Part shown: positions 579-48,089 of the stretch, piece after piece
Layout of the letters: each line of letters opens with the position of its first letter
Position numbering within the stretch: the stretch's first letter is position 1
From: Bugula neritina
Taxonomy: Eukaryota; Animalia; Bryozoa
Length of the DNA: 64,000 bases
NCBI GenBank assembly: GCA_964035545.1
Contig: OZ037772.1
Span: 310,001-374,000, forward strand
Reading direction: 5' to 3'
Translations under genes and position numbers: made by a program
Notes under the pieces: generated by a model
Told to the model about the DNA's origin: nothing
What the model saw: only the letters and a program-made list of their open reading frames with translations
Databases searched by the model: none

Positions 579-865
579 ATTAGAGGGAATTCATAGTTTA
601 TCAACATAAACATAGTCTGTGGTAAATATTAGGTCTGTGCTAAACCCACTTGCTTTCTGTAAATAACACCAGACAAAATGAAGAATGACTCATACCTCAG
701 CCTTAGGTTGCCCCTGGATCTGCACAAAGTAGGCTGGTATTCTGTGCCCCCACCATAGCTGTCTGGAGATACACCAGCCCTTGGAGTTCCTCAGCCATTT
801 GTACCAAGTGACTGTGTGATAGTCTGGTATGATCTTTAGCTTGCCTGATTCTACTACCTGCAGTA

Positions 866-1075
866 TACATACTATGCTATAGATATACTATGCTATAGGT
901 ATACTATGCTATAGATATACTATGCTATAGATATACTATGCTATAGATATACTATGCTATAGACATACTATACAGTACTAATATATATACTACACAGCAC
1001 TAATATATTATATACTATACACAGTACTAATACATATACTATACAGTACTAATATATTATATACTATACATAATA
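866..1075. repeat. 16-bp (ATACTATGCTATAGAT) repeat followed by ~22-bp TATACAGTACTAAT-type tandem repeats, in a VARS intron
   Basis: Visible tandem copies filling most of the intron between exons 857-696 and 1171-1090. Confidence 0.85.
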
Positions 1076-1754
1076 TATAATACAAGTACCTCTACAGCCT
1101 TGGCTGCCATATCGTCACATGCCACATATCACTGTGGTTTGGGTATCGGCTCAATGATATCTTTAGATCGACTATAACACAAGAGAACACAGTGTAGAGG
1201 TCATTGTTAACAGACAGACTCACATAGTAACAGTTCAACTCAACAGCATTGTAAAATATAGTGGATATGTTAATGGAGCTATTCTTTAGGAGAACAAGAG
1301 AGGACAACTTCTATTACATTGAGATCTGCAGCTATGAGTCATTTTACTTAACTTAATACACAAAGCTATATACCTTTAGCTTTTAGCTATTGTTCACAGT
1401 TGAGCTGCTAATTCAACATTTTAATGTAAGAAACTATACACATTAGCAGCTAAACTGTGAAAAATAGCTAAGAACCAGATATATGGTGTGTACTAAACTA
1501 AGTAAAATGACTCACAAGTAAACATGACCAGGAAAAGTTCAGGATCTAACTGGACGTGTATGAAGAAAATGTAGAAATCTAACAAGTTGGGATAAAATTG
1601 TAGAGAGAAGACGACTCACCTACATACAGGAACTACCATAGGGTTGTCTTCCTTTCCTTTGTATAGCCCCAAGTCTTCCAACCTTCTCTGAACAGCTTTA
1701 CAGGCATCAAACCTGCACATGAAACTTACATGGAGTAAAAATTGCTAATAGACT

Positions 1755-1826
1755 CACACCTGTCACCTGCTCACACCTGTCACATGCTCACACATGTCAC
1801 CTGTACACACCTGTCACCTGTACACA
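1755..1826. repeat. Short tandem repeat (CACACCTGTCACCTG-like), ~5 copies
   Basis: Direct tandem copies. Confidence 0.8.
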
Positions 1827-2775
1827 AATGGTATTAAACCACTAAAACCTATGTAGATCAATATTTTCTTGCTATTAAGTTGAGTAATTGTGAAACAGCC
1901 AAAATAGGAAAATAAGACCTTGTAGTGCAGTGAGCAAGGCAAGTTCAAGCCATACAACTTTAACATGTTGCATTACAGAAGAAAGATCTGCTCCATTTTG
2001 GTAAATAACTATAAGTAATATTGGGAGTTACGCCACCTTTGAGTAACAACATGGAGTTGTGTTTCTTTTCATAAACGCAAAAAGGTAAAAGTTACTTGTT
2101 CCTTCGAGGTAGCATATATAATGCAAGGAAGAACCATCTCAACTTAGAAATATGTCACACAATTAGGAGTTATGCCACCTCCTTGTCAGAAACACGGAAT
2201 ACTAGATTCACACACCTTTTCATTTCCACAAACTCGCCGAAGTCTCCACATATTAACCCGTCATCGTCAATGATTGTGAGGAAGGGGAGTTTGTGTCAGA
2301 GGCCAACGTCGTAATCCTTGGGATCATGTGAGGGGGTTATCTTCACCGCCCCTATCGACAATTAGATGGGAAGTGAGAAGCTCTGAGGCTATGAATATTA
2401 CAAACAGTACTCGTTGCTATATGAATAGACTCCAATTTAGTTCTCCCTCCGTATCTCAGTAAGCTGAGGGACCTGAAACCTCAATTCATGACACAGTAGA
2501 AATCTTACCATAGTAGAATACCATATTTAACACACGGATCTGTTAATTTAAACTAATTTGTCCCAATACACATAACATAAGCCACAAAACAAAGGACCAA
2601 GCCATTCTCATGACCTGTGGTATTTCATGAGAACTAGAAACATAAGATATAGTGGAAGCACTGCCCCAAACAAAACAAATCATATGAAATGATAGTTTAG
2701 TGATGGAAATAATTAGTTAATAGTCTTTGAAAATAGTTGGGCCGGTCAACTTCTGAAATTACCTTGTAAGAAACA

Positions 2776-3102
2776 CAACAGGCTATGAATATACAGGACA
2801 ACAGGCTATGAATATACAAGACAACAGGCTATGAATATACAGGACAACAGGCTATGAATATACAAGACAACAGGCTATGAATATACAGGACAACAGGCTA
2901 TGAATATACAGGACAACAGGCTATGAATATACAGGACAACAGGCTATGAATATACAGGACAACAGGCTATGACTATACAGGACAACAGGCTATGAATATA
3001 CAGGACAACAGGCTATGAATATACAGGACAACAGGCTATGAATATACAGGACAACAAGCTATGAATATACAGGACAACAAGCTATGAATATACAAGACAA
3101 CA
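2776..3102. repeat. 23-bp minisatellite (ACAACAGGCTATGAATATACAGG)n, ~14 copies
   Basis: Near-identical tandem copies. Confidence 0.95.
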
Positions 3103-3207
3103 GAGAACTCACAAAACCAAGATGGAGGACCTTATGATTAGTGTTTTACTTTAAGGACTTTATGCAGAGTTGTTGCCCCCTGATCAGGAAACGGCGGTAG
3201 GTGGAGG

Positions 3208-3366
3208 TAGGTGCAGTAATGGAAAAATTGAGGAAAACATGTGTTCTAGATTAGAAATATAGCACAAGAAGTTATTTTCTTGAAACTTCAACCCGCACCT
3301 TAAACCAAAATGCAATAATAATATTAAAGAACTTAGGCTATCTCAAGTTCTCCACTACTGCTCCTA
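3208..3366 (+). mobile_element. ~160-bp MITE with TAGGTGCAGTAATGG-type TIRs
   Basis: The ends taggtgcagtaatggaaaaattgag and ctcaagttctccactactgctccta are imperfect inverted repeats; a second copy lies inverted at 6736-6898. Confidence 0.7.
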
Positions 3367-5547
3367 AGTGAGAAGGTGAGAATAGTTGAGAATAGGGAGT
3401 TGAGAGAATACTGGAGTTATTTCAACTGGCAGCAAGAGTCAGCCATTATTACGTTGATAAGCAACAAGGCTATTAGTGACATTGATGTCTACTAACCCAA
3501 CATAGTTTCTAATCTAGTTGTGGCCACAATGATCTCTTCGTCAGAGTCTTCTACTTTATATGCAAAGGAAAGAAGAACTCCGAACTCCACCTTCTCCTTG
3601 TAGCCCGGCACAGAGAGCATAGTCCTTCCCGTCAACTCTACTTTGTCTACCTGCAATCAGTGATACAACTCTCTCAGACTATACAGGTCAAAGGTTAAAC
3701 TGTAGTGTGTGCTTCTGAGTCAATGCGTTTGCATTCTTTTCTATTAGTTCATATAATGTATATGAATGCTCTTACGAATGAATATGTGGCTGTGGTCTCA
3801 TTGATGTATTCATTCGAAGATAGTCATAATATGTAATATATCAGGCTGTGTCTGAATACTACTATTAGGTTAGTTACCACCAACACACAAGTCTCGCAGT
3901 GAATAAACAGTTGACGTACACACAGCCGGGAGTCAGACTGATACTGTACGATATACCTCAATATCAGAGACGGCAGAGTTGAGAGTACAGGACCAGTTGA
4001 CGAGTCGGTTAGCTCTGTAGATCACATCTTTCTCGTGCATTCTGATAAACGCTTCGTTCACCGCTTTCAAAGATTTCTAATAAACAAATATATATGAGTC
4101 ATGTGTCAAGTGTGAACTGATTGGAGACCAGGTCTCATGATTAACCAATCATAGAGAGGATAACACACTGAGTCAGTAAACAGCCGACACGGCAGATAGA
4201 CTCCACTACTCAAACATAATACATGTATAGAGAGGATAACTCCTCACCTCATCCATAGTGAACGTAGTTCTGTCCCAGTCATAAGACCCGCCCACTTTCC
4301 TCAACTGATGGTAGATTCTGTCTCCTTTTCTATAGAAATTATATAAAAACACTGACCAATCGTTGTGCTGCAAAACTTAGTTATATTAGCAACTTAAATA
4401 ATGAGTCCAATGATAGAGTGTGATGAAGTAAACCTATATTTAACTTTTTGTATATTCAATTATATATATTAATTTTATCATATTATCATATATATTATAT
4501 ATTATCTTATATCAAACTGTAGCAACTGCACACCAATAAGATAAAATAAAAACTCAAACCCGAATACTAAGTCGCCATGAAATGCATTTTCAAGATAAAA
4601 TATTCCCTTACTGGTTCTTCCAGTCCCACACTCGTCTCACAAACTCATCTCGTCCCAAATCGTGTCGAGTTTTATTCTCTTCTCTAGCGAGTTTTTTCTC
4701 GACGACCACTTGAGTGGCTATTCCTGCGTGGTCACATCCGGGTACAAACAGTGTCACCTTCCCATTCATCCAGTGCCTGACAATACAGCAGAATTGACAC
4801 CTGACAACACAAGCATATCAGACACCTGTAGATATTCTGGAAAGGTGCTGAGAGAAATATCTGTGGTTGAAAAAACATCAATATGATAGATGAATGACTT
4901 ATGCCAACCGGTACTTACCACAAATTTTCTCAGCATTCAAAAAAGAATTAACAGGGGGATGTTCATAGCCTGTCTGTGGAATATCTCAAAGTGAGTTGGC
5001 AAGATGCCAAAATGTCATGTAGTCACCACCAGAGGAATGGTGTCTACTGTTACATGCTATAAGCTACATACACCACCAGTTTAGTGACTAGGTAAGTACG
5101 GAGTTGTCTCATCTATATGAATGAACATCTCACCACCGAACTATCGCATCCTCAACCGCCCCCGCGAGGGCGTGTCCTAGGTGAAGAGTCCCGGTCACAT
5201 TAGGGGGAGGGATCAGGATGATAAACTTCTCTTCAGGTGTGAGTTTCAGCACATCTCTACCTGTTACAAAGCAACCAATCACATCTCTCTCGGTTACAAA
5301 GTAAAAAGCAACCAATCACAGTACCTGTTACAACAGAGTAACAAATCACACCTCTACGTGTTAGAAGTAACCAGTCACACATTATAGACTTTACTAGGAT
5401 GAGAAGTGTACCTTTGAGATTATACTCAGGTTTGAAGAACCCTTCCTTCTCCCACCAAAAGTACCAGGCAGCTTCCACATAGGACGGAGAGTAAGAATCA
5501 GGCATGGGACACGTCGTGTCTAGAATAACAGAAAACTATAAAGTATA

Positions 5548-5760
5548 GGGGAGTAGCTGTGGTCTAGGGGTTAGAGCGTTTGTCTAGTGAACACGAAGCC
5601 ATTGTTTGACAAAGGCCATTGTGATGTTAGGAAGAGCATCCAGTCATAATTGCTCCTGTGCCACATCTAAATAAGTCCTCAGCCTGTTTTAACAAAAATG
5701 CTTTCCACCAGGAGTCTCTCACAAGGGTGGTGACTATACACTGATATCTAAATATACTAA
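5548..5760 (+). mobile_element. tRNA-derived SINE (internally deleted copy)
   Basis: tRNA-like head plus shared body GATGTTAGGAAGAGCATCCAG..AATTGCTC and tail GTGACTATACAC; homologous to 46220-46340 and 46377-46577. Confidence 0.75.
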
Positions 5761-6735
5761 GTTGAGACTTGTCTTCTACTGGTCCATACAGTTCAAATGT
5801 GATAAACACATGTATAAATACAATAATCTATTCATAGCCCATAGTCTAACCACCAACAAGGACGAATAAATAAGACGGTGGCCTGACACTACTACTACTA
5901 CAACTTATATAACTTATACACAGCAGATTGTTAGGAGTATTTAAATCTGAGGCTATCCAATGTATGAGTAGGGCAGCCCTAAATGTAGGATATTGGAATA
6001 CGATGTCTTATTACTTCAGTCTAAAGCAGTGTTTATACCTTCACGATTTTCAGTCAGAAATTCAATTTTGCCGAGTTGCATTTCATTCTAAAAGCCAATC
6101 ATCAAAATTTTTGCTTTGTACATGCTTAATCAAATAATTTTAGAGTAACAATCAAAAGGAATGATAACTCCTTTAGATATGGGGTATTCATGTTTATAAT
6201 TACATCGGCTGTCTTTTTCAATTATCACTTTTATGCTGTCAACTTAATTTATTACGTTTTCAAAGGGCATCAAATAGTGATTAAGCGAGGTATATTTGAG
6301 TATTACAGAGTGAGCTTCCTTATTAATATGATTTCAACAATTTTAAGTAAGACTGCTTACACACATAACTGTGTGTTCACTACCGAGCAGTGTACACTGA
6401 TAAATCAGTGCTTCAACTGAAACTTGTAAGTAAAGGAATGAAGAGCTCAATTGGGTATAAAATGTAGAGAATAATTGAACTGAACCTTTCTTATGGCCAA
6501 CTGGTGTGTCCACGTTATACGTTACTACAGCCTTCTCCTTTTTCTCTTTCACTTTTTTCTAGAAAAAAAATCAAATTTGAAGAAAATAAAATGGAAATTG
6601 TTAGCTACAGATACAGACAACTTCCAGGTAAAAGTACAACCATACAGTCGCAATACGAATATGTAATTCAAGTAACACTTTCATGTAGAAGTACAACCAT
6701 AAATATGAATAGAAAGTAACACAAATATATACATT

Positions 6736-10920: not shown

Positions 10921-10929
10921 TAATTAAAT

Positions 10930-12620
10930 TACTAGTTTATATCACCAAGTTATATCACTAGTTTATGTTACCAAATTAAATTTCTAGTTTATATTACCAA
11001 GTTATATTACTAGTTTATATTACCAAGTTATATTACCAGTTTATATCACCAAGCTATATTACTAGTTTATATTACCGTGTTATATTACTAGTTTATATTA
11101 CCAAGTTATATTACTAGTTTATATTACCAAGTCATATTACCAGTTTATGTTACCAAGTTATCTTACTAGTTTATATTACCAAGTTATACTACCAAGTTAT
11201 ATTACTAGTCTATATTACCAAGTTATATTACTAGTTTATGTTACGAAGTTATATTACTAGTTTATATTACCAAGTTATATTACCAAGTTATATTACTAGT
11301 TTATGTTACCAAGTTATATTACTAGTTTATGTTACGAAGTTATATTACTAGTTTATATTACCAAGTTATATTACCAAGTTATATTACTAGTTTATATTAC
11401 CAAGTTATATTACTAGTTTATGTTACCAAGTTATATTACTAGTTTATATTACCAAGTTATACTACCAAGTTATATTACTAGTTTATGTTACCAAGTTATA
11501 TTACTAGTCTATATTACCAAGTTATATTACTAGTTTATGTTACGAAGTTATATTACTAGTTTATATTACCAAGTTATATTACTAGTTTATATTACCAAGT
11601 TATATTACTAGTTTATGTTACCAAGTTATATTACTAGTTTATGTTACGAAGTTATATTACTAGTTTATATTACCAAGTTATATTACCAAGTTATATTACT
11701 AGTTTATGTTACCAAGTTATATTACTAGTTTTTATTACCAAGTTATATTACTAGTTTATGTTACCAAGTTATATTACTAGTTTATGTTACCAAGTTATAT
11801 TACTAGTTTATGTTACCAAGTGATATTACTAGTTTATGTTACCAAGTTATATTACTAGTTTATGTTACCAAGTTATATTACTAGTTTATGTTACCAAGTT
11901 ATATTACTAGTTTATATTACCAAGTTATATTACTAGTTTATGTTACCAAGTTATATTACTAGTTTATGTTACCAAGTTATATTACTAGTTTATGTTACCA
12001 AGTTATACTACTAGTTTATATTACCAAGTTATATTGTCAGTTTATATTACCAAGTTATATTACTAGTTTATGTTACCAAGTTATATTACTAGTTTATGTT
12101 ACCAAGTTATACTACTAGTTTATATTACCAAGTTATATTGTCAGTTTATATTACCAAGTTATATTACTAGTTTATGTTACCAAGTTATACTACTAGTTTA
12201 TGTTACCAAGTTATATTACTAGTTTATATTACCAAGTTATACTACCAAGTTATATTACTAGTTTATGTTACCAAGTTATATTACTAGTCTATATTACCAA
12301 GTTATATTACTAGTTTATGTTACCAAGTTATATTACTAGTTTATGTTACCAAGTTATACTACTAGTTTATATTACCAAGTTATATTACTAGTTTATATTA
12401 CCAAGTTATATTACTAGTTTATGTTACCAAGTTATATTACTAGTTTATATTACCAAGTTATACTACCAAGTTATATTACTAGTTTATGTTACGAAGTTAT
12501 ATTACTAGTTTACGTTACCAAATTATATTACTAGTTTATATTACCAAGTTATATTACTAGTTTATATTACCAAGTTATATTACTAGTTTATATTACCAAG
12601 TTATATTACTAGTTTATACT
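10930..12620. repeat. ~1.7-kb satellite; 26-bp unit built from two 13-bp subunits (TTATATTACTAGT / TTATRTTACCAAG)
   Basis: Continuous tandem array with occasional single 13-mer insertions. Confidence 0.97.
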
Positions 12621-13525
12621 GCTCTTCAGACCCTGAGAACTGTGCGTGAGGCTTCACCTGCGAGTGTGGTGCCTGTGTTTGGGTATGTGACCTTGACAGA
12701 GACTGTGGGAAGCTGCAGATCTGTTCGGAGAAAAGATGTTATCAGCAGGCTTCACCAGATGACAGAACTGTTGTCTAGGATCTTTATCACTCAGAACTAG
12801 TAGAATGTTCTTCAGGTTTGAATGCGAAATCTTTGTTCTAAACTCTATTGGAGTTTAAAAGTGTTGCTTTCTGTTGTACTTATATCTGTGCTGGCCAGGA
12901 TTTTTGAATGATTTTTGTTATGTATTTACGTAACAGAGTGTAAACTTAAAGCTGAATTTGCTTTATTTTCCACATATTTTGGTTTGCGATTTTTCAGTAG
13001 AAACGAGGCATCACACTTGGTGTGATTATCAGCATTTTTTGCAGGTGCTTCTATCCGTGTACTGACAACACAGCCTGTCCTAGTGATGGACAAATCTGTC
13101 ACCATGGTGTCTGTAAAGAGGGCTGTCAGGTGACTAGTCGCTATGACCTACACTGCGAGTTATTGATGACTTTCATACTATGAGTTATGACTACCTACTA
13201 TAATTTATACTGCGAGTCCAAGTAGCTGCTGTAACTTATGCTGTGAGTCATGACTAACTGATATCACTTATACTGTGAGTCAATTATCAAAAATAGAGAT
13301 ATGTTGTGTATGTGAGATATGTGAGGTTATTTAGTGACTAGTTCGCTATTTATAGAGTTTTGTTTCTATTAATAGACTGTACTGAAGATGAACAATGTGG
13401 ATCTGAGTTTACTGAATGCATATCCAACATATGCTATCAGCTTTATCCTCTCAACAATCCAGATCTTTCTGATGCTGAGCAGGACAAACTCTTTGATGAT
13501 CGGCTAGATCTACAGAATGATGGTA

Positions 13526-13742
13526 AGTTACTCTGTTAGTACAGTTACTCTGTTAGTACAGTTACTCTGTTAGTACAGTTACTCTGTTAGTATAGTTACT
13601 CTGTTAGTATAGTTACTTTGTTAGTACAGTTACTCTGTTAGTATAGTTGCTCTGTTAGTATAGTTACTCTGTTAGTACAGTTACTCTGTTAGTACAGTTA
13701 CTCTGTTAGTATAGTTACTCTGTTAGTATAGTTACTCTGTAA
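13526..13742. repeat. 17-bp minisatellite (AGTTACTCTGTTAGTAY)n
   Basis: About 13 copies beginning at the splice donor. Confidence 0.95.
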
Positions 13743-14421
13743 AGTTGTGTTTATACCTTCACGATTTTTCAAATTGAAAGTAAGAAATGGGGTCATTTCA
13801 GCATTCATAAGCTGCACATAATAGCTTATGTGTATATTTATACGGTGTGGACTTGCTATTACTGCGAGCAACAATATTACCAGCATGGGTGGTTGATTTA
13901 ACCTCTTAGTAGTTCCCATGGCTTACATACAATAAAATTCTAGTTGAATAGAATATTTACTATTGTAAAGTACAAAACAAATGACCAGAATATTTCATTT
14001 GTTGAACAGAAATTAATTTGTAATACTACTGTGGATTGGCTACTGTGCATTAGCTAGATGTAGGTGGAGTCCACGCTACCCAGCCATCCAGATGCATATA
14101 CTAAAGGGCCATTCAAAAACCAGCCAATCAAAGTCATTGATCTTACCATGGAGAGGAAGGGTTCACCCGATGTTGATGGCCTGCCTGGTATATCCGGCAA
14201 TCCTGGAGATGCAGGAGAAAGGACACCACCTTGTTTTTCAGGAGATATCGGACTTTTTGGAGAACCAGGTAATGTTTATGCTCAATTGAGTTTAATCTGT
14301 CAAGTTATATTGGGATCTTTTTCGTTTTCGTTATTTTATGTTTGTTACGTGGAAAAAGGAAAAAACTCTGTCTTGGAGCATTTTGGTTTTTTCAGAGAGC
14401 TTTGGATTATTTGATTATGGT

Positions 14422-14630
14422 CTACACAGGGGTGTAGACAAACTAAACTAGACAGGGGTGTAGACAAACTAAACTAGACAGGGGTGTAGACAGAATAAAA
14501 TACACAGGGCTGTAAACAGACTAAACTACACTGGGGTGTAGACAGACTAAACAACACAGAGGTGTAGACAGACTAAACTAGAGAGGGGTGTAGACAGACT
14601 AAACTACACAGGGCTGTAGACAGACTAGAC
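14422..14630. repeat. 26-bp minisatellite (CTACACAGGGGTGTAGACAGACTAAA)n
   Basis: About 8 copies, each with an internal CTACAC/GTGTAG inverted core. Confidence 0.9.
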
Positions 14631-17600
14631 TAACCAGTGGTCTAGATGGACTAAACCTCCTACGAACTTACAATTACCTTGCGTCATGACGTCTCTATTC
14701 TCTCCTATAATTTGACTTTTATTTAGCGAGCAGATTTCTAGTAGGCTATACTATAGTGACCAGTCACACTGTTTATTATAGCAACATGGAAATCAAGTTG
14801 AAAACTAGTTGCACCTGGTGTGATGTTATCAATGGGTGCTTACAGGTAGAGACGGAGTACCTGGATCTGTTCAGATCGGATATCAGGGTAAACAAGGAGA
14901 TCAAGGTCCTGCAGGTAAGAATGAGGAGTTACTCACCCTTGCTTGTGTATTTCTGTTCTTTTTAGGTATTCTATAATATGCTGGGGTTCTCCTCACAGCT
15001 AGTCTGCACTAAGGCAGGGTGTAGGCTAAGTAATCATATTAAATCCCAGCAGTGCTTGTTACTTCAACTGACAGGATTACTGTGTATGATAGTTACTCTG
15101 ACTGGTTTTCATGGATCATTTTTGCCATACTGTTTACCACATGATGCATTGTCTGAGTAAAAACAAGGAAACGAAGAAATATACCAGAAATGTTGAGAAA
15201 TTTTGTATTCCAAATTTGTTAAAATACCACTTGTAATGCACACTGGTGTTGCTTGGTTCATAGGACCTGTCGGACAAGCTGGAGAACCCGGTCTGGATGG
15301 CAGAAATGGAAAAACAGGAGAAACTGGACCAGCTGGTATGCCCGGTCCAACCGGCTCAAGGGGAGTCACAGGAGAACCCGGATCTGATGAAAGGTAATAT
15401 TTGTGTTTCACTTCACCCTATTCAGCTTCTTGGAACTTTTTATCTCTTTTGTTTTTATAATTTTGTTGTCAATTTTCTCAGAGACGGTTTACCTGGAGTA
15501 CCGGGTGCTGATGGTAGACCTGGGGAGCAGGGTGATCAAGGACCTCCTGGCCCCATGGGTCCAGTGGGATTCCCCGGTAACCAGGGACCTGAAGGTGCTC
15601 AAGGAGACAAGGGTGATAAGGCAGGAACATTCTTTATTCAGTTTTCTTTTTATTTCAGTTCTCTGGTTTTCCACTAGTCAATCCTGTAGTTGTTTATTTG
15701 TTTTAGTTTATTTATGTTAATACTAGAGTTGCTTCAGTGACATCACATCATGTAATATATTACATAACAGTACAGTATAATACACCATAATATAATATGT
15801 TATACAATACAATATTGTTACAGAAAATAGAATTCACTAATATCTCACAGCTAAGTTGTGTCTTCTAAATATATTCATTACTATAGGGGCCAGCTGGGCC
15901 AGAGGGTGCTTCTGGACCAACTGGATTGTCTGGACCAGCGAGTCCACGTGGGCCAACTGGTCCTCAGGAACCCCAGGGAGCTAAGGTATGAATTAAGTTG
16001 AACCTATCTTTGTCCTTAGTTATTGGCCATCAACAGAATCATGGCTCTAAGAGTTTTCCTACCTGGTAAGAAGATAAGGCAACTCCTAACTCATGATAAT
16101 AGGAATGGTGCTGCTGTTGTAGGACCCACTGGTTTTCAGGGACCTCAGGGATTCCCCAGATCTCCCGGTATTGATGGTGCAAGGGGAGATGTCGGATCAC
16201 TTGGTATTGCTGGACCACCCGGGCTACTGGGTGCTGATGGCAAACAAGGAATAACTGGTTCTCCTGGTGCTATGGGTCTACCTGGACCTGATGGTGCTAA
16301 GGTACACACTTACACTCACGCTCACACACGCATGCACTTACACTGTTAGCAGGTTATTGTTATTCATCTTGTTAGTTTAGTGGCAATAAACCAATAGTCT
16401 GTATTTCTAGGGTGAACAAGGGAGAGATGGAGAAATGGGTAGTCCTGGCAGTCCTGGACCTCCTGGACCACCTGGTGAAGCCCCAGTATTTGGTTAGTTA
16501 TTAGTAAAACCAAGTTATTGTCCATTACTTGTATCTTTTTTATTTTCTTTCAACTGTTTATTGGTAATATTTTGGGAATTTCATCTATAGCTTGTGATTG
16601 AAGCTTCTATTTATTCTACCACGGGTTATGTTAGGTGCGCCCCCTATGATGATGAGTGCAATGATGTCCAACAGTAAAGGTGTACAAGCAGATGATGCAG
16701 GCGCCAACAATGAGCTCTATAATATGTACCTCAGTGAGTAATGGCCATGATGTGCTTTGATGTTGCCCGCTTTGTAGCGGAAAAACTCTTTTAAATGCTG
16801 TTTTGGAACTCAAACGAAAGACTCGTTTCAAATTGTGTGTATGTTTTTGCAAATGAACAATTTTATAATTAACTGTTAGAAACTATTGTAATGAAAATAT
16901 AGACAGCTGTTATAATGTATTTCTCCTCCTAGCATCGATGATTGACATTCTTTCTTGATGAGTCGCTTATTTAGTTCGCTTCTTCAGTTGAATGTTGCTA
17001 CATTCTGACATATTATATAACGTTGGTTTCATTGCTGTTAGCTTACATCGCTACTTCTACCTTATTTCTCTAGAAACAAAAGTAAGGAACGGGTCCAAAG
17101 ACAGCCCTGTTAGGGACTGTAGAGAACTCTTCACTGAAAACCCAGAGTTCAAAAGTGGAACTAATTGGGTGAGAGAAGATACTGATATGTTTCTTTTTTT
17201 CTCTGCTCAGAAGAAATCCGTATCCAAGTCTTACGACTGAAATTCTGTGAACATGTTTTATATTCTGCAATTACTACTCCTGAGATGTCAATATAATGTC
17301 ATGTGAAGTTTCTACAGATATTTAATGAATTGTTGTTTAGGAAGAAGAGTTTTCCCATGAGTTGCCTGTATTATATAATTCTGTATATTCAACAGCTGAA
17401 CAGGTTTTAGTAGTTTCATTTGATATTAGCATTATGTTAGTGTGAAATAGAGAAGTTGTATTCTCTATTGTTTGTTGTCAGATGGATCTAGATGGTGGCT
17501 CCATAGCTAATGCTATCCAGGCTTACTGTCGCAAGGAAATGAAGAGCACTTGTATCAATGTCAAAACCTCTGAGTTTGCCACCAAATCGTACGTCACCCA

Positions 17601-18022
17601 GCAGCTAGATAATCAGCCATTCATTGCTAAACACATGGGAACAGCACTCGTGAGTGTTTATCTTGTATCAACCATGACTGTCTTAGTAATAGTCAAGAAT
17701 ATCCAAGAGTTTTATGTTGATAGGTGTCGCTATAGTAACGTGTTGGTTTCCTGTATGGATGTTGCTAGTCACCAGATACTAGTCCTCTACTATGTTGCTA
17801 GTCACTTGATAATCTGAACAATCACTGGCTTCTTCTTAAGCTGAGCGAGTTGTTGGTATGACTATTCCTTTTGCTGATTGTAGATGTATAAACTCAGTGG
17901 CGGTAGAAGACGCATTCAGTAGGAAGAATAGGTCAGTCATTTTATATACAGCTGGTGAAAAAGAATACACAGTAACAGTCAGCAGGTTCCAATATTCAGT
18001 GCTGCAGGTTGATTGCAAGGTA

Positions 18023-21300: not shown

Positions 21301-21427
21301 TTACTGCATAACCAATTGTAAAACAACGCTGATGTTTCAAACTCAGCGCGCTTAGCACATTTAAAAATCATGTGAAAAAAACGGGACATTTTCAAATTGA
21401 TGTATGTTGATTGGCTGAACAGTTTAG

Positions 21428-22434
<1,007 letters not shown>

Positions 22435-30470: not shown

Positions 30471-30471
30471 A

Positions 30472-30778: not shown

Positions 30779-31389
30779 TGGATGCACATATTTGTCTTAT
30801 ATCCAAGTTAAAATAAATCATATGTTCTGTTACCTAATTTATTCATTGTTTGGACAGCATGCATCTAAGTAATGTAGAATAGTCATTTGGTGTAAACATT
30901 ATATGTACCTAGAGTAAATTTTTATTAAGCACTCATGTTTTAGGTTTTCATATTATTTTGGTATGCCGCTATAAACTGCAAGATTGATTGTTAAATAAGT
31001 AATAATGCTAATAGCTGCAGTAACTAATTTAAACTATCTAAAATAATATTCCAATTTTATTTGATTTGGGACAAAAAACAGTAATAAATTTATTTTCAGA
31101 GTTGATCTTTAATGAATACTTATCAACAAATATCTTTTCAAACAACAAGAAGTATAATACGTGCAAAATTTTTAAGTTGATGCAGATTAACAGAACTTAT
31201 TTATGGGTTAAATAACAAGCAATTGATTTAAGCTTTTTCAAATAGGAGGTTATTTTAATGATAGTAAAATGAATTTTACGTAAAATATATATTGTACGAA
31301 AATAAACAAATAGCAGCTAACTGGGAAGGAAGCATCTAACTGAGATGATAACATGTTATGTTACATCACCTTATTGTGTATGATTTTAG

Positions 31390-33414
31390 TATCAAGAACT
31401 TTTCCTGGACCACCTACTACCACAACCAGTTTACCAACTAGTCAAGAAGCAAATAATGGAGATAATCCAGAAGGTGCTTAATAAAAAAATTGTATATTTG
31501 GCGATAACCTCTAAATTTGTGATAACTGTCATTATATTATCATACTTGCAAAAACATAATATTCAATAGTATCATGATTATATTAGCTAAGAATGTACCT
31601 GTGGTATTGTTTGGAGTTTACAGCTTTGACATCAAAGAGGCTTTACTAATTTATATTTGTTTGATCAATGAATCATAGCACTTACTATCATGCAGTCCAA
31701 ATTTCTGTTCTGCATGCATCTTCAAATGAGATTTAAATGTTCAATTAGAATTACTTATTTAATGTTTTGTTTATTTTTAGTTAGAAATGTTGAAAATATT
31801 GAAGAGGTACCAGTTCAACAAGCCATGGAAGGTTTGTGTTGACACTTTGAAAATGTTTTATGGTTACAATTGACATAACATACAATTACTTTAATGTGAT
31901 GATGATTGTATTAAATTATCAGTATGACAAGACACTTTTATCTATGATATTTTTCCTGTTTTAAAGTACAAGAAATAGATGAAAATAACAGCTCCAGCGC
32001 CGGACCAGCTGATCCTATTGAAGCACTCAAGAAAGACATATAGAAGGTGCTTAGTAATGTACCATAATCAAATTTCTGTATTTATACAAGTTTTTAGCCA
32101 AAGAGTTGCAATCACATGTTCTCCTGTAGTTTTCAGAACAAAAAGATGCTTTTGTTGAGCAGAGTCTTGAGCTTGGTGACTTGACGAAATTGCTTTGGTC
32201 TTAGATAAGTCACAAAAGCATTTATTTGTAATTAATCTAAATACTAATATAAGACAGTTATAAATTAGATCTTAGTTTCAGGTCATATATAGTATGAAAT
32301 TTCACAGACATGAAGAAACAACTAAAGAAGGTGCTGGATGGGCAGAAAAAACTGATGGCTATAATCACTGATAGCCATAGTGGCAAAGACAATATAACTG
32401 AGCAGCTGGAGGAGCCGCTAAAAACAATACAAGAGTTTGAATCTCTTGAAGAACTTCTCCAATCCTCAAGAGAAAAACGTTCTGCTCTGGTACATAGTAT
32501 GCTACTATATAATATAGATTGTATAGCTAGTTTAAAAACTTTTGGTGTATAATATGCAATATATAACATCCTGGCGTAGTTGATATTAGAATACAATTTC
32601 TAGTGAACTGTAGATTTTCAAGCTATAAAGTGTGTTTCTCTTATGAAATGTTTCTCATTAAAGTGTTAGAAAAAATATTTGCCCCACTGCAATAACACAT
32701 TGAATGTATTCATGTAAATTCCTGCTATGAAATATAGGTGCATTAATGTTGTAAACAAAGTTTCTTTTCCAACTGGGAGGAAAAAACTGCGCAGATATGG
32801 TGAAAAGAGCCATGAGAAGAATTGGCACCAATGGGCTGTGGAGCCAATTCAGTATGAAGGGCAAAGCCCATAAACAACATAAAAAGCTGTCTCTAAAAAT
32901 ATATTGAAATAAAATCTGTATCAAAACTTATCAAATCTCTGGGACTGCATCAGCAGTTAAAATAGTTGTTGAGTTGTTGAGTTTAGAATAATTGCTCATC
33001 TAAAAATTTACTGCATTCACTAAGTTTTACTTTCTAATTATATTTCAGAAGCTCTGCTGAAAAGTAAAAGTAATAAAGAAATAGATATAGAGATTGAAGT
33101 ATCGCTATTTTTGCCGCAGTGCCCTTATCAACTGGGAGGGGATAAGTATAAAAAGACAAGTTTGCAAGATGAGGTTTTTGTTCTGTTGTTTTTCATTTTT
33201 CTTAACAAAATAAAATAGCCATTACAGAGATCGGTGTAGGATCGCAAACCTTTCACCAATGTTGTATGAAAACCATTTATGCAACGTTATGCAACACAAC
33301 GTTTATGGAACGTTGGTAAAAGTTTTGCGATAAACGTTTGTTTTAAAAGTTATATATAGTACAAAAATGTGTCGACATTTAAACGTTTATTAAACAATTT
33401 GTAAATTGTTGGTG
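31390..33414 (+). mobile_element. Relic of a CACTA/EnSpm(CMC)-like transposon with a spliced DUF4806-type gene and 3' subterminal repeats
   Basis: Exon-like blocks ending in FLFQLGGKNCADMVKRAMRRIGTNGLWSQFSMKGK (32761-32900) and EIEVSLFLPQCPYQLGGDKYKK (33049-33170) fit the DUF4806 pattern. Clustered AACGTT repeats at 33245-33400 end in TTGTTGGTGG. Confidence 0.6.
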
Positions 33415-33749
33415 GAGTGATTGTTAAAGAACTAGGGGGATGTTTTGATGGCTCTATAACTGAACCTGAAGAATCAGCTAGTGCTATACTAGACTGACTA
33501 TACAAAGATATCAAGCAAGGCTATGTCAATTATTGTACTAGCGATAATTTGCTATATCTCATAACCAGCTGCACAAAACCAAAGCAAGCATGGGGCACTT
33601 TACAAAAACCCAGAATCAGAAAGCAAGTCAGGAAACTGACAGTGCCTTTCTTCTATCAAAAAGGGAGACAACCAACTATACTAACCAAAAAAATACTTAA
33701 ACTGACACTTCATCTAAATTCGTCAAAATAAAAAATAGTTGTTGTAAAC

Positions 33750-34310
33750 ATGACAACTGCACAAGATGGTGCAGAGTTGTCCACCCAAAATAATCAAAAG
33801 ACATCAACTGCTATCGACAAAACAGGAATGCTTATCAATAGATGAGTATGTCACCAACTTACATAGGATTGCCAGGAAATGCGACCTTGGTGACATGTAT
33901 GATGCTTTTTTTATGCAGGCCTTTTTTCTTGGCATCAACGACACGAACAACTTTGGAGGAAATTGTTCGAGGTGTCAGAAAACATAGACCTCAAAAAAGC
34001 TATTAAAAAGTGCAAAGTGGCTGAGAGCTCTCAGAGTAATATGAAGACTATTAAAGCGGAAGGAGAATCAATTCATACACTTGGTCTCAAGGCCACTAAA
34101 GCAAACAAAAGTGTCAAACTGTACTTACTCACAACTGACAAGGAAGCGAATAATCCTGCCAAGTCTAACTGTGGAAACTGTGGCAACTCTCATCCTTCCG
34201 AAAATGCTTACGGTAAACAGTGTAGTAACTGCAAGAAATCCAACCACTTCAGAGCAGTCTGCAGATCCAGGAAAAACGGCAGAATAAATGCAGGCACTGG
34301 ACACATAGCT
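33750..34310 (+). mobile_element. Gypsy gag fragment with double zinc knuckle (deleted, frameshifted)
   Basis: SIDEYVTNLHRIARKCDLG...CGNCGNSH..AYGKQCSNCKKSNHFRAVC. Confidence 0.8.
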
Positions 34311-37300
34311 AAAACATTAAAGCTTTACCTGCAATGTTTTTACCTTTTTTAGGTTAAATGCAATAAAAAGAAGTGCAGTGTCAAATATACATGTAGCTTC
34401 AAATAGACTTGCACTCATGGCAACTGAAATTCATGGACAATAATAGTTCTATACTCAAAATACGTGCAGATAAGTCAGTAATAAGTCTAAAGTTGTGTTT
34501 ATACCTCTCCTGAACAAAGTATTTGTGTTTCAGTTAATAACACTCTTCAGAGTGCACCCTTATATAGTCTTACTGAAACTTGGTGACATTTCAACTTGAA
34601 TTTAATTGCTGACTAAAAATTTGGAAGGTATAAATGCAACTTAGCAAATATTACCTAAGAACCCTATCTAATAAAATAGTTGTGAAGTTTTAGCTACATG
34701 TAACATTTTAATAGACAAAATTACAATCACCCACCCTAGTGCTTACAAACTACAAAACCTGGTTTGATAACCGGGAATTTTAAATAACAATTCATTTCAT
34801 CAAGATTAGAATTAAAATAAATTTTTTATGGCATTCTCACCAAATAAAGATTCGCTGTTATTGTCCAACTTTGCTCTTTTAATCAAATTATTAAAAGCAC
34901 TTTGAACAATAGAAGCTGAGTCTACAAAAGAAGGAAGATGCATGTAAATACAATTTTATATCTGAGTGTTATTCCGTGCATTTAATCCAAAAATGTTAAT
35001 AAGAAAAACTGAAGGCTACTGAGTGTGTGTTACAAAAATGTTATATAAAGCCTGAGATCATGCTTTAAAACACTTTAAATATTGCATAATATATATTAAA
35101 TCAAATAAGTACAGGATCAAAATATATATAGATATTATAATTTATTATATGTATAAATATACATGAAGTGCTAGCATAATGTAGCTAATATTTTATATTA
35201 TGATAAGCCATAAGTGATCATTATAATTTTAAACAGTGTATAAGTTCGCAGTCTAAATACAATAAATAGATAGCTGTTGTCCATATTTTCAATGCAAGCT
35301 GATTAGAAATTGCCAGTGCAGAGTGTGACAGCCGATACTGGTTGCTGTATCAGCTGATAATTGTTGCTGCGTCAGCACGGGTGCTGTTTGGCACGGATGT
35401 CTATGTATTATGATTCACTTAACAAAGGGTGAATGAATTGAGGACACAGATGCAGGCCACAACTCTATTTTTTGTTTATTGCCAACAGTATATTTTCTAA
35501 GTTAGACTTAGACTCGAGCTCATACTGATGCTCATACTGTAACCTATAACCATGAGAATTACAAACATCATGTCAACTCAACATTGATTACACAGCTGAC
35601 AAAACATTTAGTTGATGAAGTTCAAAACAAAAGATAATATAATACTTGATACTCACAATTAAGTACAGATTGCCTGCATCTTTAGCAGAGGGAAAATTGA
35701 GCTACAGTGACTCATTGAATAAAAACAGCCAGCAAATAGCTATCTCGAAAGCTTTCACAAATAGCTTTCATTTCACAATGGTTTTTGGAAAGCTGCCAAA
35801 ACTCCTGCAACACAGAGATCTATACATGGCCTTCAAAGCTGTTAACATATATTTCATAGAGTTCCAATCACCATTAAAACAAAGTTTGAGTATAGTAGGC
35901 AATATAATTACTGAACAGACTAACTTTAAATATATATTAATGTAAGAGGTCTAACATTATTCTTAAAAACAAAGTAATAAAAGTAACAAGCTAAAGTTGC
36001 TTTCAAAATAAAATAATTATTTACAGGTAGACATTATTAAATTAAAATGTTTGGTATTAGATTACATCATATAGTTTTTTGGTAAACATTATGCATGATT
36101 GTTTCCCCAATCAACAAGAAGTCATATTATGCAGTTTGATGATTTGGATTATTTAAAAAAGATAATTGTATTTTTAGTAAATTGTTACATGAAACAAAAT
36201 TGCACATTTTCTCATAAATTTAACTACAGTTAAAACAACATTATTATTTTGTGGTAAGACTGGAAGAAATTAAAATAATACTCGACCTAAGAAAATACAT
36301 ACCTTTTGCTGTCTCCAACTTGCTGCTCAACTTTTCTTTTTTGCTTTTGGTAAAAACAGGCATTTTTTCTAAGAATTTAGTTATATTATAGTGTTTAAAA
36401 GTACTATGGTTTCCCAGCAAGCTTTACCTTGCTGAAATGTAACTTTCCAGTGTCAGAATAGCAGGTTTGACAAAATTTCTTATTTATATACTGCTATAAT
36501 AGTAACAGAGAAAATTATCTGTTCCTACAATTACTTCTACTAAGGTCTAGAGGGAGAGTGCATCCCTATAATAGATAATAGACCCTTTGTAGTTCTGGGC
36601 CAATTTTCGTTTCATCTTCATAATAATCAGGAAGCTTAAGTAAGCTTAAAAGTTTTTAATTTACCAAAAATGGCTGCCAAGAGTTGTACTTTAGTTTGAG
36701 CCTTATAAAAAAACCCTGGAATTAGCCTATTTGGCCGCAACTTCAAAAGCACTGTCATAATTATAAATTCTTTTGAAGAAGTTTACCCTCAAATACTGTA
36801 TACAATAAAGAAAAATCTTCAAGCTAGCTGTTCTATTTTTCTTGGTTTTGTGTTATCTCAGTACATGCAAAGTTTATAGTTTCTATGAGAGACCTTTTTC
36901 AACTGGCTGAGCATAATAGCTGAAAATTTTGTCTGCTGTCACTACAACGTGAACTTTTATAATAGGAGATGTTAAGAAATGCTTGCAGCTTACTTTTGCG
37001 ACTATAAATATTAGACCCTGTAGCATTTAAGACACCAAGTTTCATTCACAATAAACCTAATGGGAATCAAGAGATAATAAATTCAAAGTTATTACCACAT
37101 ATTATTGAAAATTATCTATACATGTCTTACTCTTTTTTTGTGTAGGTAATCATATTATATGACTAGCAAGAAATTTAGATTTTGATATTCACCCATTGCG
37201 TGAACAATATTTTTTCTAACTGAATTATTTTACTTGAAAAATTTTCAAAACAGGTAAACCAATTCAGCAACTAGTTTTAAAGTTTGAAAAAGGCATGTAG

Positions 37301-43335: not shown

Positions 43336-43340
<5 letters not shown>

Positions 43341-43834: not shown

Positions 43835-45329
43835 CTATCCATGTACATGACTTGCACCAAGTAGATGCCAAACGTTTCCTTTTCTGTGTTGGCAACTTGG
43901 AGCAGAACTCTTTTGGGTTGAAGGTCTGAAATAGATGGGGAAGAGATGATTCACCGCCCCTAGCAGAGGCGTGATGTCAAGAGAAGAATCCGAGGTCAAG
44001 TTACGACAACTTCTTCTTATGGTGTTGGCGGCTTTGAGAAAGATAGCTCTGTCGCACTCCTTGCCTGAAAACAGGAAACGGGTCATTGTACTTCTATAAA
44101 GGAAACGTACATGAACTGTATCAGAAGCTCAAACTAAAGTCTGTTAATAGTAATGAAAGATATAACAATGTTAATGAGAATTAAAGGCTCTATTAATAGT
44201 AATCATTAGATATCTGAATTTGAATTGTGGGAGGCTAACGCACTCACCCTGAGTAAACATCAGTTTGAACAGAGCACTGAGGTTATCTCCAATACTGTTG
44301 AGACTAGCTATAGCCTGGGAGCACATATCATATTGCAGCCACGGGTCTACCTTAGTAAGTTTCATACCTTCCAACTGTAAAAAGACGACAGAGCGAATAA
44401 AAAAGAATAACTGAACAGAGAATACATTCAACAACAGGTGGTTGTCAGGTGGGTGATATTCCTTACTGCTTCCCTCTGATCGCGTGATGTAACAGTCAAA
44501 TATGACATCACATGTCAACTCACTCTGCACTGCGGGTGGCTGTGACAAGCAGTGCTCCATACTTAGACCACCCACAGTCCAAGCACCTGGAGCACTGCCC
44601 ACATATGGACAAGTGACAAGACAAAGTGCTGGGGATAACTAGCAATACAAAGATAATTAACAGTCAGAGTATGAAGCTGGTACTCACCAGTTTGAAAGTG
44701 TTTCCAATATCATCTCTATAACTGGTTAGAAAGGATTGCACTTGGTAGAGTACTCTGTTAACAGCACCATAAATATCCTCTTTAGCGTGGCAGTTGCCGG
44801 CACCTGCACAACATGAAATAATTACCACCTGCTATTCGTTGACATATGTTAGACCAGTTGCTAGTGACATCAAATGACAGGTACTTGGTTAGCAAATTTA
44901 TACAAATATGAGAGTTCTACTGTCACTTGATCAAAGCTTCCGACACTCTTCGGCTAGTGTGACTCATAAATTATATATGACTTAGGCTAGCAAGTAAGCA
45001 TGAGCTCATTTTATAAGCTATGTAGCTCAAAACTATGCAAGCATCCTACCATAAAGAGACACCACTACACACCGCATCATTGGTATGAGAGTCTTCATAA
45101 GAACTAAAGCTACACTCAAGCCCCACCAGCATGATAGAATATATTGCAAACACTTACTATTGCACATATAGTCTATGGATGAGAGGGTTGCAGTCAGCTT
45201 CTTTGTAGATGTATGGATTCATTGAGCAAGGGCACCTTGGGCACATGCCATGCGCACATCTGTTGACAGCTGTCAAGTACATGACAGTACGTATTGATGC
45301 ACTGCCTTATCTATGTTACTCAGCAGTGC
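43835..45329 (-). pseudogene. 3' exons of an unidentified gene, degenerate
   Basis: GT-AG exons 45329-45158 (ALLSNIDKAVHQYVLSCT*QL..AQ*IH), 44803-44688, 44374-44248 and 44093-43835. The first three are phase-compatible. Two TGA stops and a frame shift at the last junction. Confidence 0.55.
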
Positions 45330-46219
45330 CTGCAAACAAATAAGGAAATATTACTTATGAAATGAGCAGAATTCTTTTTATTTCAGAGATTTTACATACT
45401 CTTACATTAACAAAGACATAAATTTCGAACATCTACATAAAATATTGGAGATAATTTAAATTTTTCTGCAAAATCTGTAAGTTGAACACTAAAAAACAAG
45501 TTTCTGCCCAACATAAAATGTCAACCATTGGAGAATCTTCTGACTCTATAAGTTTGTATCATGAGGATATATTTATTACGATGTGATCAACATCTGCAGC
45601 TTTTCAGAGAAACTAAACTGAATTATGTTGTAAGGCTATTCATGCTATAGTTAACCACTACTATCAATCAATAAAAACAGAAACTGAAAATATCTCTAGT
45701 TACTGTGACATTGCAAAAATGTTGTAAGAAAAATTATTCCAACTTGTAGAAATTGAAAAATTATATTTATAAAAATATTGCAACCTGTAGAAAATTTCAA
45801 AAATGTTTTCAAACAAATCTAAATTTATAACTTTAAAGGGAGAGATCTCAAATAATAATAACACATTGTAATAATCTGATTCAAATACATACCTTTTCGG
45901 TTAGAGAAGAAATATTTCAAATATGAAATAGTTATTGACTTGAGGGATCGTAACTCTCAACTTGTAAAGTTTTGTAAGGAACGCCAAGAATTTGTCTGTC
46001 CACAGCCAGATGTGACGGTGTGACTCTCTCGTTCTGTAATGTCACAGATAATTAATAAATCGACAGTGAAACAATAAACAGTGTCTGTGATAGAGGTAGA
46101 TCTACAAAAAGGACCATGCGTAGCGTAATAGTGTGAGTGTTTTAGAACCAAACACCATTGGTGATGTTTGAAGAGCCCCCAGTCATAACTTTGTCCATAA
46201 TGGAGATAGACCTATAAAA

Positions 46220-46340
46220 GGGACAGCTGTGGTGTACTGAGTAGAGTGCTGGCCTAGTAAACATAAGGTCAGTGGTTGCAGTTCAAACACAGACAGTGAT
46301 GTGAGAAAGAGCATCCAGTAACAATTGCTCCTGCTTCACA
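46220..46340 (+). mobile_element. tRNA-derived SINE, truncated copy
   Basis: Same head and AGAGCATCCAG..AATTGCTCC body as the neighbouring copy. Confidence 0.7.
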
Positions 46341-46376
46341 AGGTCAACATAAATAAAAAATAACAAACAAAAAGAT

Positions 46377-46577
46377 GGAGCAGCTGTGGGCTAGAGGTTA
46401 GAGCACTGGTTTAGTAAACACAAAGTCACGGGTTCGAACCCCAGTAAAGGCTATTGGTGATGTTAGGAAGACCATCCAGCCATAATTGCTCTAGTGTCCC
46501 ACCTGAACATGTCCTTAGTCTGGTTTAGAAAGACTCTTTCCATCAGGGGTTTCTCACAGGGATAGTGACTATACACT
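46377..46577 (+). mobile_element. tRNA-derived SINE, near full length
   Basis: A-box-like TGGGCTAGAGG, B-box GGTTCGAACC, and a TAGTAAA loop suggesting tRNA-Thr(AGT) origin; three copies in the window. Confidence 0.8.
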
Positions 46578-48089
46578 CACAAAAGTTTTACAATTATTAA
46601 AGCAGCAGAATTAGCAGAACATCAGTGAATGTAAACTCAGGTGAATTTTTTAAAATTTATAACATTAAACTAGGACACAGACCTCTAACATAAACTCAAA
46701 GAGCCTATTGCCAAAACCCTGCCGTTGCTTCTTCTCATGGACATGGAAGTCAAGGATACACAGTGGCTCTACCTCTCTCTGATTACCTTGATGGTCGTAG
46801 AGAAACAACTTCTTGATAAAACCAACAGCTGTGCCTTTTTATTACTGCAACAGTATGAAACTATCAGCAACTTGCAGACAGAGAAAGCTTAATCAAAAAC
46901 GAAATTCAGTTTTCCAAATATATGTAAGCTTTCAAGGAGAACATAAAAATTGGCAGCCAATTACAGAGCAAAATGTCACCTTAAAATTTTTATACTGTCA
47001 GCTTAACGTGAACATCAAATATGCAAAATAGAAAACTCTATAGTCTGAGAATTTATAACTTTAGCCCAATAAAATAGTGTGTATTTCGAGTGCTGTCTAA
47101 CTGCCCTGCATCCATTGAAAGTATTAGAATAGATGATGACTCACCTATTTGACTGACATTCAGTATAGATGTAAACTCTTTGGTGAGTATAGGAAAGCTT
47201 GCTGCTTGTAGTTGTCACAGTTGAAAGGCCCTGGGCTTTCTCGGATGCTTCACTCAGTCTGTCAATGACGTGGCACAGGTGCTTCTGAGTGCTTGGGACA
47301 CTAAAAGGAAATGTCATGACATCATTTCCTTTCATATTACAACAGTAAGTAGATATATGATCAATACCAAAACTATGCCAACCCAATTTCCAAACTACCA
47401 TTCAGATTTGGCATGTAAGCCAATAAATTAATATGAATAGACTCATTTCAAACTATCACAAAAGTTTGCTATTTTATGAAGCTGTAAGTAAACTGTGGTA
47501 TGAAAATTAATGTAAAACACGCTTTTTAGTGACTGTAGTACATGTAGAACTAGTAGTAGTCTAACTTGAATCTCAAAATTTTATAATGCAAAAAACTCTA
47601 AAATCTTATGCTGATTCATTAACTTATATTTTAATGTAGAATACCTCTATCCTCTTTTCTAACTTTAGATCACTCACTATCTATGTTTGTATACATAACA
47701 TTTGTTAAAAAACTCTCAATTTATTAGATTATTAAAAACTACATTTTTTCTTTATTTCACTTAAATTTCAACATAAAAATTCGATTAAGTATGAAATAAC
47801 GTTAAAATTAACTTCAAGAATCTTGTTATGTTTTTAAAAATATAAAACCCTAATTCAAACTTTGATAATTTAGAAAAAAATAGTTTAAAATCATTTGTAT
47901 ATAATTGCAGCAACAATTACTATTAGTTAATTGAAAAAGGTTTTGATTTAGCTGACCTAAGGCTAATAATAAATTGTTCAAATTTTTGTACATGTGTCAC
48001 CAACTTTAAATTACTTAGTTTACAAATACTTTTGCTGGTCTTAAGAGTCTATCGATGATAAAAATAGTTTTTCCTTCCACAAGTGAGCT

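Follow-up and report, generated by a model that had tools for sequence, protein, structure and literature searches.

In the 64,000-nucleotide stretch of Bugula neritina DNA analysed here (the window), copies of VARS (valyl-tRNA synthetase), a fibrillar-type collagen and ATAT1 (alpha-tubulin N-acetyltransferase) lie in a 47-kb block next to a TRIM gene. We consider that these copies are redundant passengers of recurrent segmental duplication in the neighbouring TRIM-NHL array, and we give this reading a probability of about 0.55. As such, the VARS, collagen and ATAT1 copies are an ordinary kind of genomic debris. Intron-exon structure is kept in VARS (11 exons) and ATAT1 (3 exons), and both genes carry lesions that disable their reading frames. 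The features on which this reading is based are listed in the table.

Table. Features of the window, with positions counted from its first letter.
Feature	Position	Strand	Basis or remark
VARS unprocessed pseudogene, 5' half	696..6558	-	Pfam tRNA-synt_1 on exon ORFs
VARS exons 1-6	6558-~6486, 5519-5412, 5260-5134, 4776-4612, 4329-4248, 4076-3957	-	borders from DNA
VARS exons 7-11	3650-3497, 2351-2216, 1712-1620, 1171-1090, 857-696	-	borders from DNA
In-frame TGA, VARS exon I (…PKPQ*YVAC…)	1129..1131	-	TGG in second copy (L005); Trp in all references
In-frame TGA, VARS exon G2 (…DYDVGL*HKL…)	2296..2298	-	AGA in second copy (L005); Arg in Watersipora and references
23-bp minisatellite at site of lost VARS exon G1	2775..3108	-	comparison with L005
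26-bp satellite, ~63 copies, between VARS and collagen	10989..12618	.	Tandem Repeats Finder
Short fibrillar-type collagen copy	13001..18666	+	Pfam Collagen and COLFI
Collagen, Cys-rich exons	13001-13536	+	
Collagen, helix exons	14178-16494	+	
Collagen, C-propeptide exons	16635-18666	+	
Coiled-coil ORFs	20872..24636	-	three-frame reading
Retrotransposon gag-like fragments, three similar pieces	29765..34349	+	ORF translations
Three exon-like splice-flanked ORFs, last ends in stop	43838..44800	-	ORF reading
ATAT1 unprocessed pseudogene, 3 exons	45893..47317	-	Pfam Acetyltransf_16; human ATAT1 (PDB) alignments
ATAT1 exons	47317-47145, 46844-46683, 46033-45893	-	GT/AG borders, DNA reading; agree with human alignments
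Gypsy-type LTR retrotransposon (gag, protease-RT-RNase H and integrase ORFs)	48766..54137	+	Pfam RVT_1, RT_RNaseH, rve
TRIM gene, 5' half	58820..64000	+	Pfam zf-RING_UBOX and zf-B_box

The VARS pseudogene extends past the window start, the exons seen here representing the 5' half of the gene. GT/AG borders and a compatible phase are present at every junction among these exons, which are about 80% identical to Watersipora VARS (P0256) by tblastn and agree with it in their borders. Besides the two in-frame TGA codons, exon G1, which spans some 50 codons in the editing domain (DTAVAVHP...FGTG), is deleted between 3497 and 2351. This exon is kept in a second copy of the block, described below, at L005:11286-11438. 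The segment L005:10981-11431, exon G1 included, is without counterpart in the window, and a 37-nt motif adjoining G1 in L005 has grown to about 14 copies in the window. An additional exon upstream of 2352, carrying a TAA stop and lacking an FGTG motif, was also considered, but this stretch is intron according to both L005 and Watersipora.

Compared with the second copy, the VARS exons show 17 replacement and 14 silent differences, i.e. a replacement fraction of 0.55 versus a neutral expectation of 0.73 (p=0.02), and exon divergence is lower than intron divergence. This suggests that a signal of purifying selection is still present in these exons. With such a replacement deficit, a long-dead passenger needs an added assumption, either gene conversion or recent death. 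An intact parental VARS presumably resides elsewhere in the genome; no Bugula VARS of at least 554 aa is found among the best 120 matches to Watersipora VARS. A search with one VARS exon returned mainly fragment matches, plus P0001, which pointed to another copy, and a scan of JGI metagenomes gave matches in other organisms only, all at 85% or less.

The collagen copy has a helix of only about 90 Gly-X-Y triplets, with at least six breaks at the glycine position (SPR, EPQ, RSP, ERD, TPP, CFS). One helix exon has no GT donor after 15620, and two phase mismatches are present in the C-propeptide. The terminal stop is in place at 18664-18666, and neither a premature stop nor a frameshift was detected in the recognisable exons. 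The initial annotation had described a block of dead, intron-bearing genes with several lesions each. This description applies to VARS, with its two stops and lost exon, and to ATAT1, with two frameshifts and a four-codon deletion, but not to the collagen in terms of stops or frameshifts. The collagen copy is evolving neutrally: its C-propeptide differs from L005 by 49 replacement and 16 silent changes, which is the neutral expectation. The neutral evolution expected of an unprocessed pseudogene is seen, in comparison with the second copy, for collagen but not for VARS.

In ATAT1, exon 1 ends in phase 2, whereas exon 2 has its conserved frame displaced by one base. This frame is preceded by TAA TAA, and the frameshift was placed at 46844-46836. 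Exon 2 also carries a 12-nt deletion within a conserved hairpin. In exon 3 the frame shifts after LAVDR, near 45996-45993, and the downstream frame matches residues 166-193 of the human protein (E=6e-5). One of the ATAT1 frameshifts falls within an A5 run. The three exon-like ORFs at 43838-44800, previously listed as an unknown gene, have no Pfam or Atlas match; they could belong either to the 3' part of ATAT1 or to a different gene. The coiled-coil ORFs, previously called PACT-like, could likewise not be identified with Pfam or Atlas. A frameshift and a TAG (close to 21060) are probable in these ORFs at about 21050-21090, as judged from their own reading frames.

The idea that debris of transposable elements fills the gaps of the block receives modest support, from the gag-like fragments (one weakly matching Retrotrans_gag, at 33754-33984), from repeats resembling SINEs and from numerous satellites. 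No large internal duplication was found in the window by self-BLAST. The TRIM gene starts about 11 kb from the pseudogene block and extends past the window end, only its 5' half being inside. This half encodes a RING, two B-boxes and a coiled coil; its exon ORFs are uninterrupted and its donor sites could be read. The decay boundary formerly placed at 47-58 kb corresponds to the Gypsy element, which has a GC content of 48-54% versus about 33% in its surroundings, and to the upstream region of the TRIM gene.

The second collagen-VARS copy is located on contig VXIV02002135.1 of the 2020 draft GCA_010799875.2 (pieces L005 and L006). VARS and a COLFI collagen are found there in the same order and orientation as in the window, and the contig encodes the protein P0327, "VARS [Bugula neritina]". 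The two sequences, the second being from another individual's draft assembly, are collinear over about 20 kb at 88-93% identity, with large indels and a substitution divergence of 5.7-9.5%. Divergence of non-coding DNA is uneven, with 5.7% in the VARS part versus 9.5% in the collagen part. Two segments of the window, 9.1-16.3 kb and 20.2-40.9 kb, are missing from the contig, as are the 26-bp satellite (an alignment gap versus L006) and the coiled-coil stretch. The contig carries stops and frameshifts of its own, although some of the latter may be indel artefacts (PacBio RS-II, one Pilon round), and not a single lesion is common to both copies. A third variant, represented by metagenome contigs from two metagenomes (L001/L002), has two private 1-bp deletions. 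The window's own version is present in US samples, as 2016 symbiont-metagenome runs contain about 0.27 of the window 31-mers.

These data do not support the proposal that the whole block decayed together: no lesion is common to the copies, the VARS exons keep a sign of constraint whereas collagen is neutral, and non-coding divergence is 5.7% in one part and 9.5% in the other. A segmental duplicate had been among the causes first put forward. The existence of a second, structurally different collagen-VARS copy agrees with duplication, but the process looks recurrent and not like a single old event.

The window and the 2020 contig could also be alleles, that is, very divergent haplotypes with presence-absence variation, on both of which the genes are dispensable or dead. 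In the 2020 genome paper, high heterozygosity and a two-peak k-mer profile were described for a specimen genotyped as type S, a type reported present in the UK, and an alignment that is collinear for about 20 kb with large indels would be consistent with such haplotypes. Yet, since this specimen is of the type found in the UK, a divergence of 6-9% is too high for ordinary alleles, the measured substitution values being far over those usual for alleles. The third variant and the presence of the window's own 31-mers in US runs also argue against allelism, which we regard as unlikely. The second copy is more probably paralogous, judging from the sequence comparison. Sibling species (types S, D and N) were considered as a source of the 6-9% divergence, and were discarded for the 2020 contig, which is type S; the metagenome contigs may derive from such a type.

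Alternatively, a block of housekeeping genes might have been duplicated just once, in a segmental event of greater age, and the copy might lie near TRIM by chance, with no causal tie to the array. Such an event would be compatible with the conserved gene order and introns of unrelated genes, several of which carry lesions, but the block occurs in at least two or three versions. Moreover, all splice sites being intact and VARS having only two stops argues for a young copy. This possibility thus appears doubtful.

According to the passenger reading, a multi-gene segment (ATAT1, the coiled-coil gene, fibrillar collagen and VARS) would originally have adjoined a TRIM-NHL gene. It would have been copied more than once while the TRIM-NHL array expanded by segmental duplication, the link between the two being their adjacency. 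The TRIM gene may have been the sole selected cargo and its neighbours redundant. As redundant passengers, these neighbours would be lost independently by each copy, whether by point mutation to a stop, by a small frameshift, by loss of an exon at a minisatellite or by a large deletion. The residual constraint of the VARS exons might be due to gene conversion from time to time, or to inactivation at a late date. Intact parents of the passenger genes presumably exist. In a variant that we find improbable, the block itself keeps what was originally the flank of the TRIM-NHL array, with a linkage (VARS, fibrillar collagen, ATAT1, TRIM) that resembles the vertebrate MHC region, its exons being partly refreshed by conversion from intact parents. 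Recurrent duplication together with such conversion would explain why replacements are in deficit and why no lesion is common to the copies.

Decay of the whole region as part of a non-recombining or dispensable segment (a sex-limited, B or germline-restricted chromosome, or a supergene haplotype) is very unlikely. Bugula neritina is a colonial hermaphrodite, which counts against this reading. Colonies from the UK and the US, as well as metagenomes, contain the block or something close to it, and the exon ORFs of a TRIM gene situated 11 kb away are uninterrupted. The window belongs to a Hi-C-scaffolded piece that reaches at least 9.8 Mb further, and the genome note (tzBugNeri2.1) states "Sex chromosomes: None", which disfavours the sex-limited chromosome suggested in the initial annotation.

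Still less credible is that the genes are intact and that errors of assembly or consensus simulate the lesions. The A5 run at one ATAT1 frameshift could be taken in this sense, as could about a dozen small RNA runs, in which 10-15% of the VARS-stretch words are present. Such errors would hardly produce two substitutions to TGA, deletions of 8 nt and 12 nt, a 450-bp exon deletion, radical replacements at conserved residues and a neutrally evolving collagen in an assembly made from HiFi reads at 132x with a QV of 53.7. A fractionating homeolog from whole-genome duplication, also suggested earlier and in line with several unrelated genes decaying side by side, has almost no credit left in view of 0.7% duplicated BUSCO genes in a 216-Mb genome of 9 chromosomes and of copies diverged by 6-9% only.

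If the block is the original flank, the dead copies would document where a hypervariable receptor array of an invertebrate was born and how it duplicated. Dead passengers could also serve as neutral markers to date duplications, to reveal gene conversion within the array and to locate its ancestral position. For annotators, passengers may inflate gene counts or pass for an essential gene; the 2020 annotation already labels a 95-aa fragment model of the VARS copy "VARS".

The block can be compared with three known systems. Like degenerating regions of Y/W, germline-restricted or B chromosomes, it shows unrelated genes broken in a row and an accumulation of repeats. Unlike them, it occurs in a species for which no sex chromosomes are reported, beside TRIM exon ORFs that are uninterrupted, and in several diverged versions instead of one decaying homolog. 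It shares with unprocessed pseudogenes in segmental duplications the conservation of introns and gene order, the stops and frameshifts, and the copying of neighbours as one block. It differs from these by the replacement deficit of its VARS exons and by lesions that are private to each copy. Duplication blocks of immune clusters, such as human MHC class I units and plant NLR clusters, carry passenger gene fragments. As in these clusters, a diversifying receptor family in fast expansion, here TRIM-NHL, is interspersed with dead unrelated neighbour genes, whereas the receptor is in this case a RING E3 ligase of a bryozoan, linked to the block by adjacency.

The initial annotation described a block of five dead intron-bearing genes, and for two of them this is confirmed: VARS and ATAT1 are intron-bearing copies of conserved genes, side by side, each broken several times by stops, exon loss or frameshifts. 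For VARS, 11 exons could be laid out with GT/AG sites and compatible phases at all junctions. Among the references, a valine--tRNA ligase-like protein of Watersipora subatra (P0256) matches best, with about 80% identity to the window's exons. Three disabling changes are present, namely two TGA codons (see table) and the absence of an editing-domain exon (encoding DTAVAVHP...FGTG). This exon is retained at L005:11286-11438 in a second copy of the block, and about 450 bp surrounding it are missing from the window relative to L005. An expanded minisatellite sits exactly on the deletion junction: a 37-nt intronic motif, present in about 1.5 copies at L005:11436-11472, corresponds to about 14 tandem 23-bp units at 2775-3108. 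As the lost exon runs from phase 1 to phase 1, its loss by itself does not shift the frame. The stretch directly upstream of 2352 is intron, so that a TAA and an apparent motif loss there do not count as lesions. About 12 small runs labelled as possible same-organism RNA contain 10-15% of sampled words from the VARS stretch (650-6600). This could mean that the copy is transcribed, that a near-identical parent is expressed, or that the words belong to repeats. No Bugula VARS of at least 554 aa was found among the best 120 matches to the Watersipora VARS, and sequence searches including JGI metagenomes did not find the intact parental genes.

Features of the window and the matches or remarks attached to them
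Feature	Position	Strand	Basis or remark
VARS	6558 down to 696, then off the window	-	Pfam tRNA-synt_1 on ORFs with contiguous profile positions
VARS TGA	1131-1129	-	Trp there invariant in every aligned reference
VARS TGA	2298-2296	-	In place of Arg
Fibrillar-type collagen	14.1-18.7 kb	+	Pfam Collagen and COLFI matches
ATAT1, 3 exons	Exon 1: 47317-47145	-	Pfam Acetyltransf_16 and human ATAT1 alignments
Short-unit satellite and (TA)n sites	10989-12618, 13526-13740, 14422-14656, 18023-18351, 23677-23826		
Gypsy-type retrotransposon	48766-54137		Long gag, protease-RT-RNase H and integrase ORFs

In ATAT1, exon 1 terminates in phase 2. In exon 2 the sole good acceptor (ttgcag at 46845) is followed by TAA TAA, the conserved frame is shifted by one base next to an A5 run, and four codons are missing from the conserved IKVGYKKLF hairpin. 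One frame of exon 3 gives NERVTPSHLAVDR and the next gives KFLAFLTKLYKLRVTIPQVNNYFIFE, which aligns with human residues 166-193 (E=6e-5); about 8 nt spanning Pro-Ser-Gln codons are gone. Neither the coiled-coil exons nor those of the "unknown gene" received a name from Pfam or Atlas search. The coiled-coil frame runs on past a change of frame and a TAG at about 21050-21090, which suggests two candidate lesions.

The second copy was reached through P0327 (VARS [Bugula neritina], KAF6027142.1), found with a VARS exon ORF to which it is 97% identical across the in-frame part. It is located on contig VXIV02002135.1 of the 2020 draft GCA_010799875.2, of which 17.3 kb (L005/L006) were compared. This stretch is collinear with window positions 624-20214 and again 40889-41521, at a BLAST identity of only 82-93%, and lacks the window's 9.1-16.3 kb (satellite and collagen helix exons) and 20.2-40.9 kb. 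It reads TGG and AGA at the sites of the window's two VARS TGAs. Its private lesions in VARS are a TAG in exon B, a stop in exon E and changes of frame in exons A, C, F, H and J; its collagen C-propeptide contains a TGA. The draft was built from raw PacBio RS-II reads and a single round of Pilon, so errors may account for some of the indels. No lesion is common to the two copies. The 2020 annotation of L006:81-3948 places gene models of 95 and 66 aa on the broken VARS copy, one of them named VARS, so that pseudogene pieces stand recorded as proteins. A third version, on contigs L001 and L002 from two unrelated ENA metagenomes, shows about 92% identity in substitutions, and two 1-bp deletions in its exon B are private to it. 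Of the window's own 31-mers, about 0.27 occur in the 2016 symbiont-metagenome runs; by label, year and mention these runs appear to be the US Illumina data with which the draft was later polished.

The collagen is a less direct case. Its helix exons total only about 90 triplets, with the non-glycine triplets TPP, CFS, ERD, SPR, EPQ and RSP and one two-residue insertion. No GT donor follows the exon that ends at 15620, and two C-propeptide junctions are phase-mismatched unless minor acceptors serve. The exons have no internal stop or frameshift, so the sequence by itself would allow an unusual but functional gene. Comparing it with L005 argues against this: replacement and silent changes in the C-propeptide number 49:16, at the neutral expectation (a replacement fraction of 0.73, from the non-coding substitution spectrum), and exons diverge by 8.5% versus 9.5% for non-coding sequence. 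The collagen is unconstrained, and its death is supported indirectly. Neutrality did not extend to the VARS exons (387 codons), with 17:14 against the same expected replacement fraction of 0.73 (one-sided p=0.024), Nei-Gojobori pN 0.021 and pS 0.056, and an intron mismatch of 0.057. Either constraint on VARS lasted for part of the period after the copies separated, or an intact parent occasionally converts its exons. Divergence is uneven along the block (5.7% in the VARS part versus 9.5% in the collagen part), which speaks against one simple shared age. With this, the VARS replacement deficit and the absence of common lesions, the proposal that the block decayed together is not supported.

Segmental duplication is the fitting cause among those proposed, given the collinear diverged second copy. 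The data point to paralogous copies, via recurrent segmental duplication in the TRIM-NHL array, the compared copies coming from different assemblies. At 5.7-9.5%, and with many large indels, the substitution divergence between window and 2020 contig exceeds ordinary heterozygosity by a wide margin. A sibling species as source of the 2020 contig's divergence is unlikely: genotyping assigned the 2020 colonies to type S, one of the cryptic species, and type S is reported from the UK, the origin of the HiFi specimen. According to its genome note, the HiFi assembly tzBugNeri2.1 comprises 216 Mb in 9 chromosomes and 320 scaffolds (GC 34.5-35%, 132x coverage, QV 53.7). Its duplicated BUSCO fraction of 0.7% contradicts a fractionating polyploid homeolog; a sex-limited chromosome does not fit, no sex chromosomes being listed, and neither do the other exotic causes proposed.

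The window is AT-rich, with a GC of 26-41% except within one transposon. The dead genes and the stretches between them are unusually dense in short-unit satellites (17-26 bp) and in long (TA)n tracts. A VARS intron (5550-5742) and an ATAT1 intron (46377-46577) each contain a copy of a SINE-like repeat with a tRNA-type box B (GGTTCGAACCC), the two copies being about 76% identical. Directly past the window's last VARS exon, several frames of a minisatellite at 229-606 stay open (7-residue GHTHSRK-like units); the 2020 contig stops at the matching point.

The window terminates in RING, B-box and coiled-coil exons of a TRIM gene. What had been taken for a decay boundary at 47-58 kb is the Gypsy-type element, GC-rich (48-54% versus about 33% in its surroundings), together with the region upstream of this gene. 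In human, VARS1, ATAT1, COL11A2 and TRIM genes lie in or beside the MHC region at 6p21. The parental locus may thus preserve an old VARS-collagen-ATAT1-TRIM linkage, beside a later hypervariable TRIM-NHL array.
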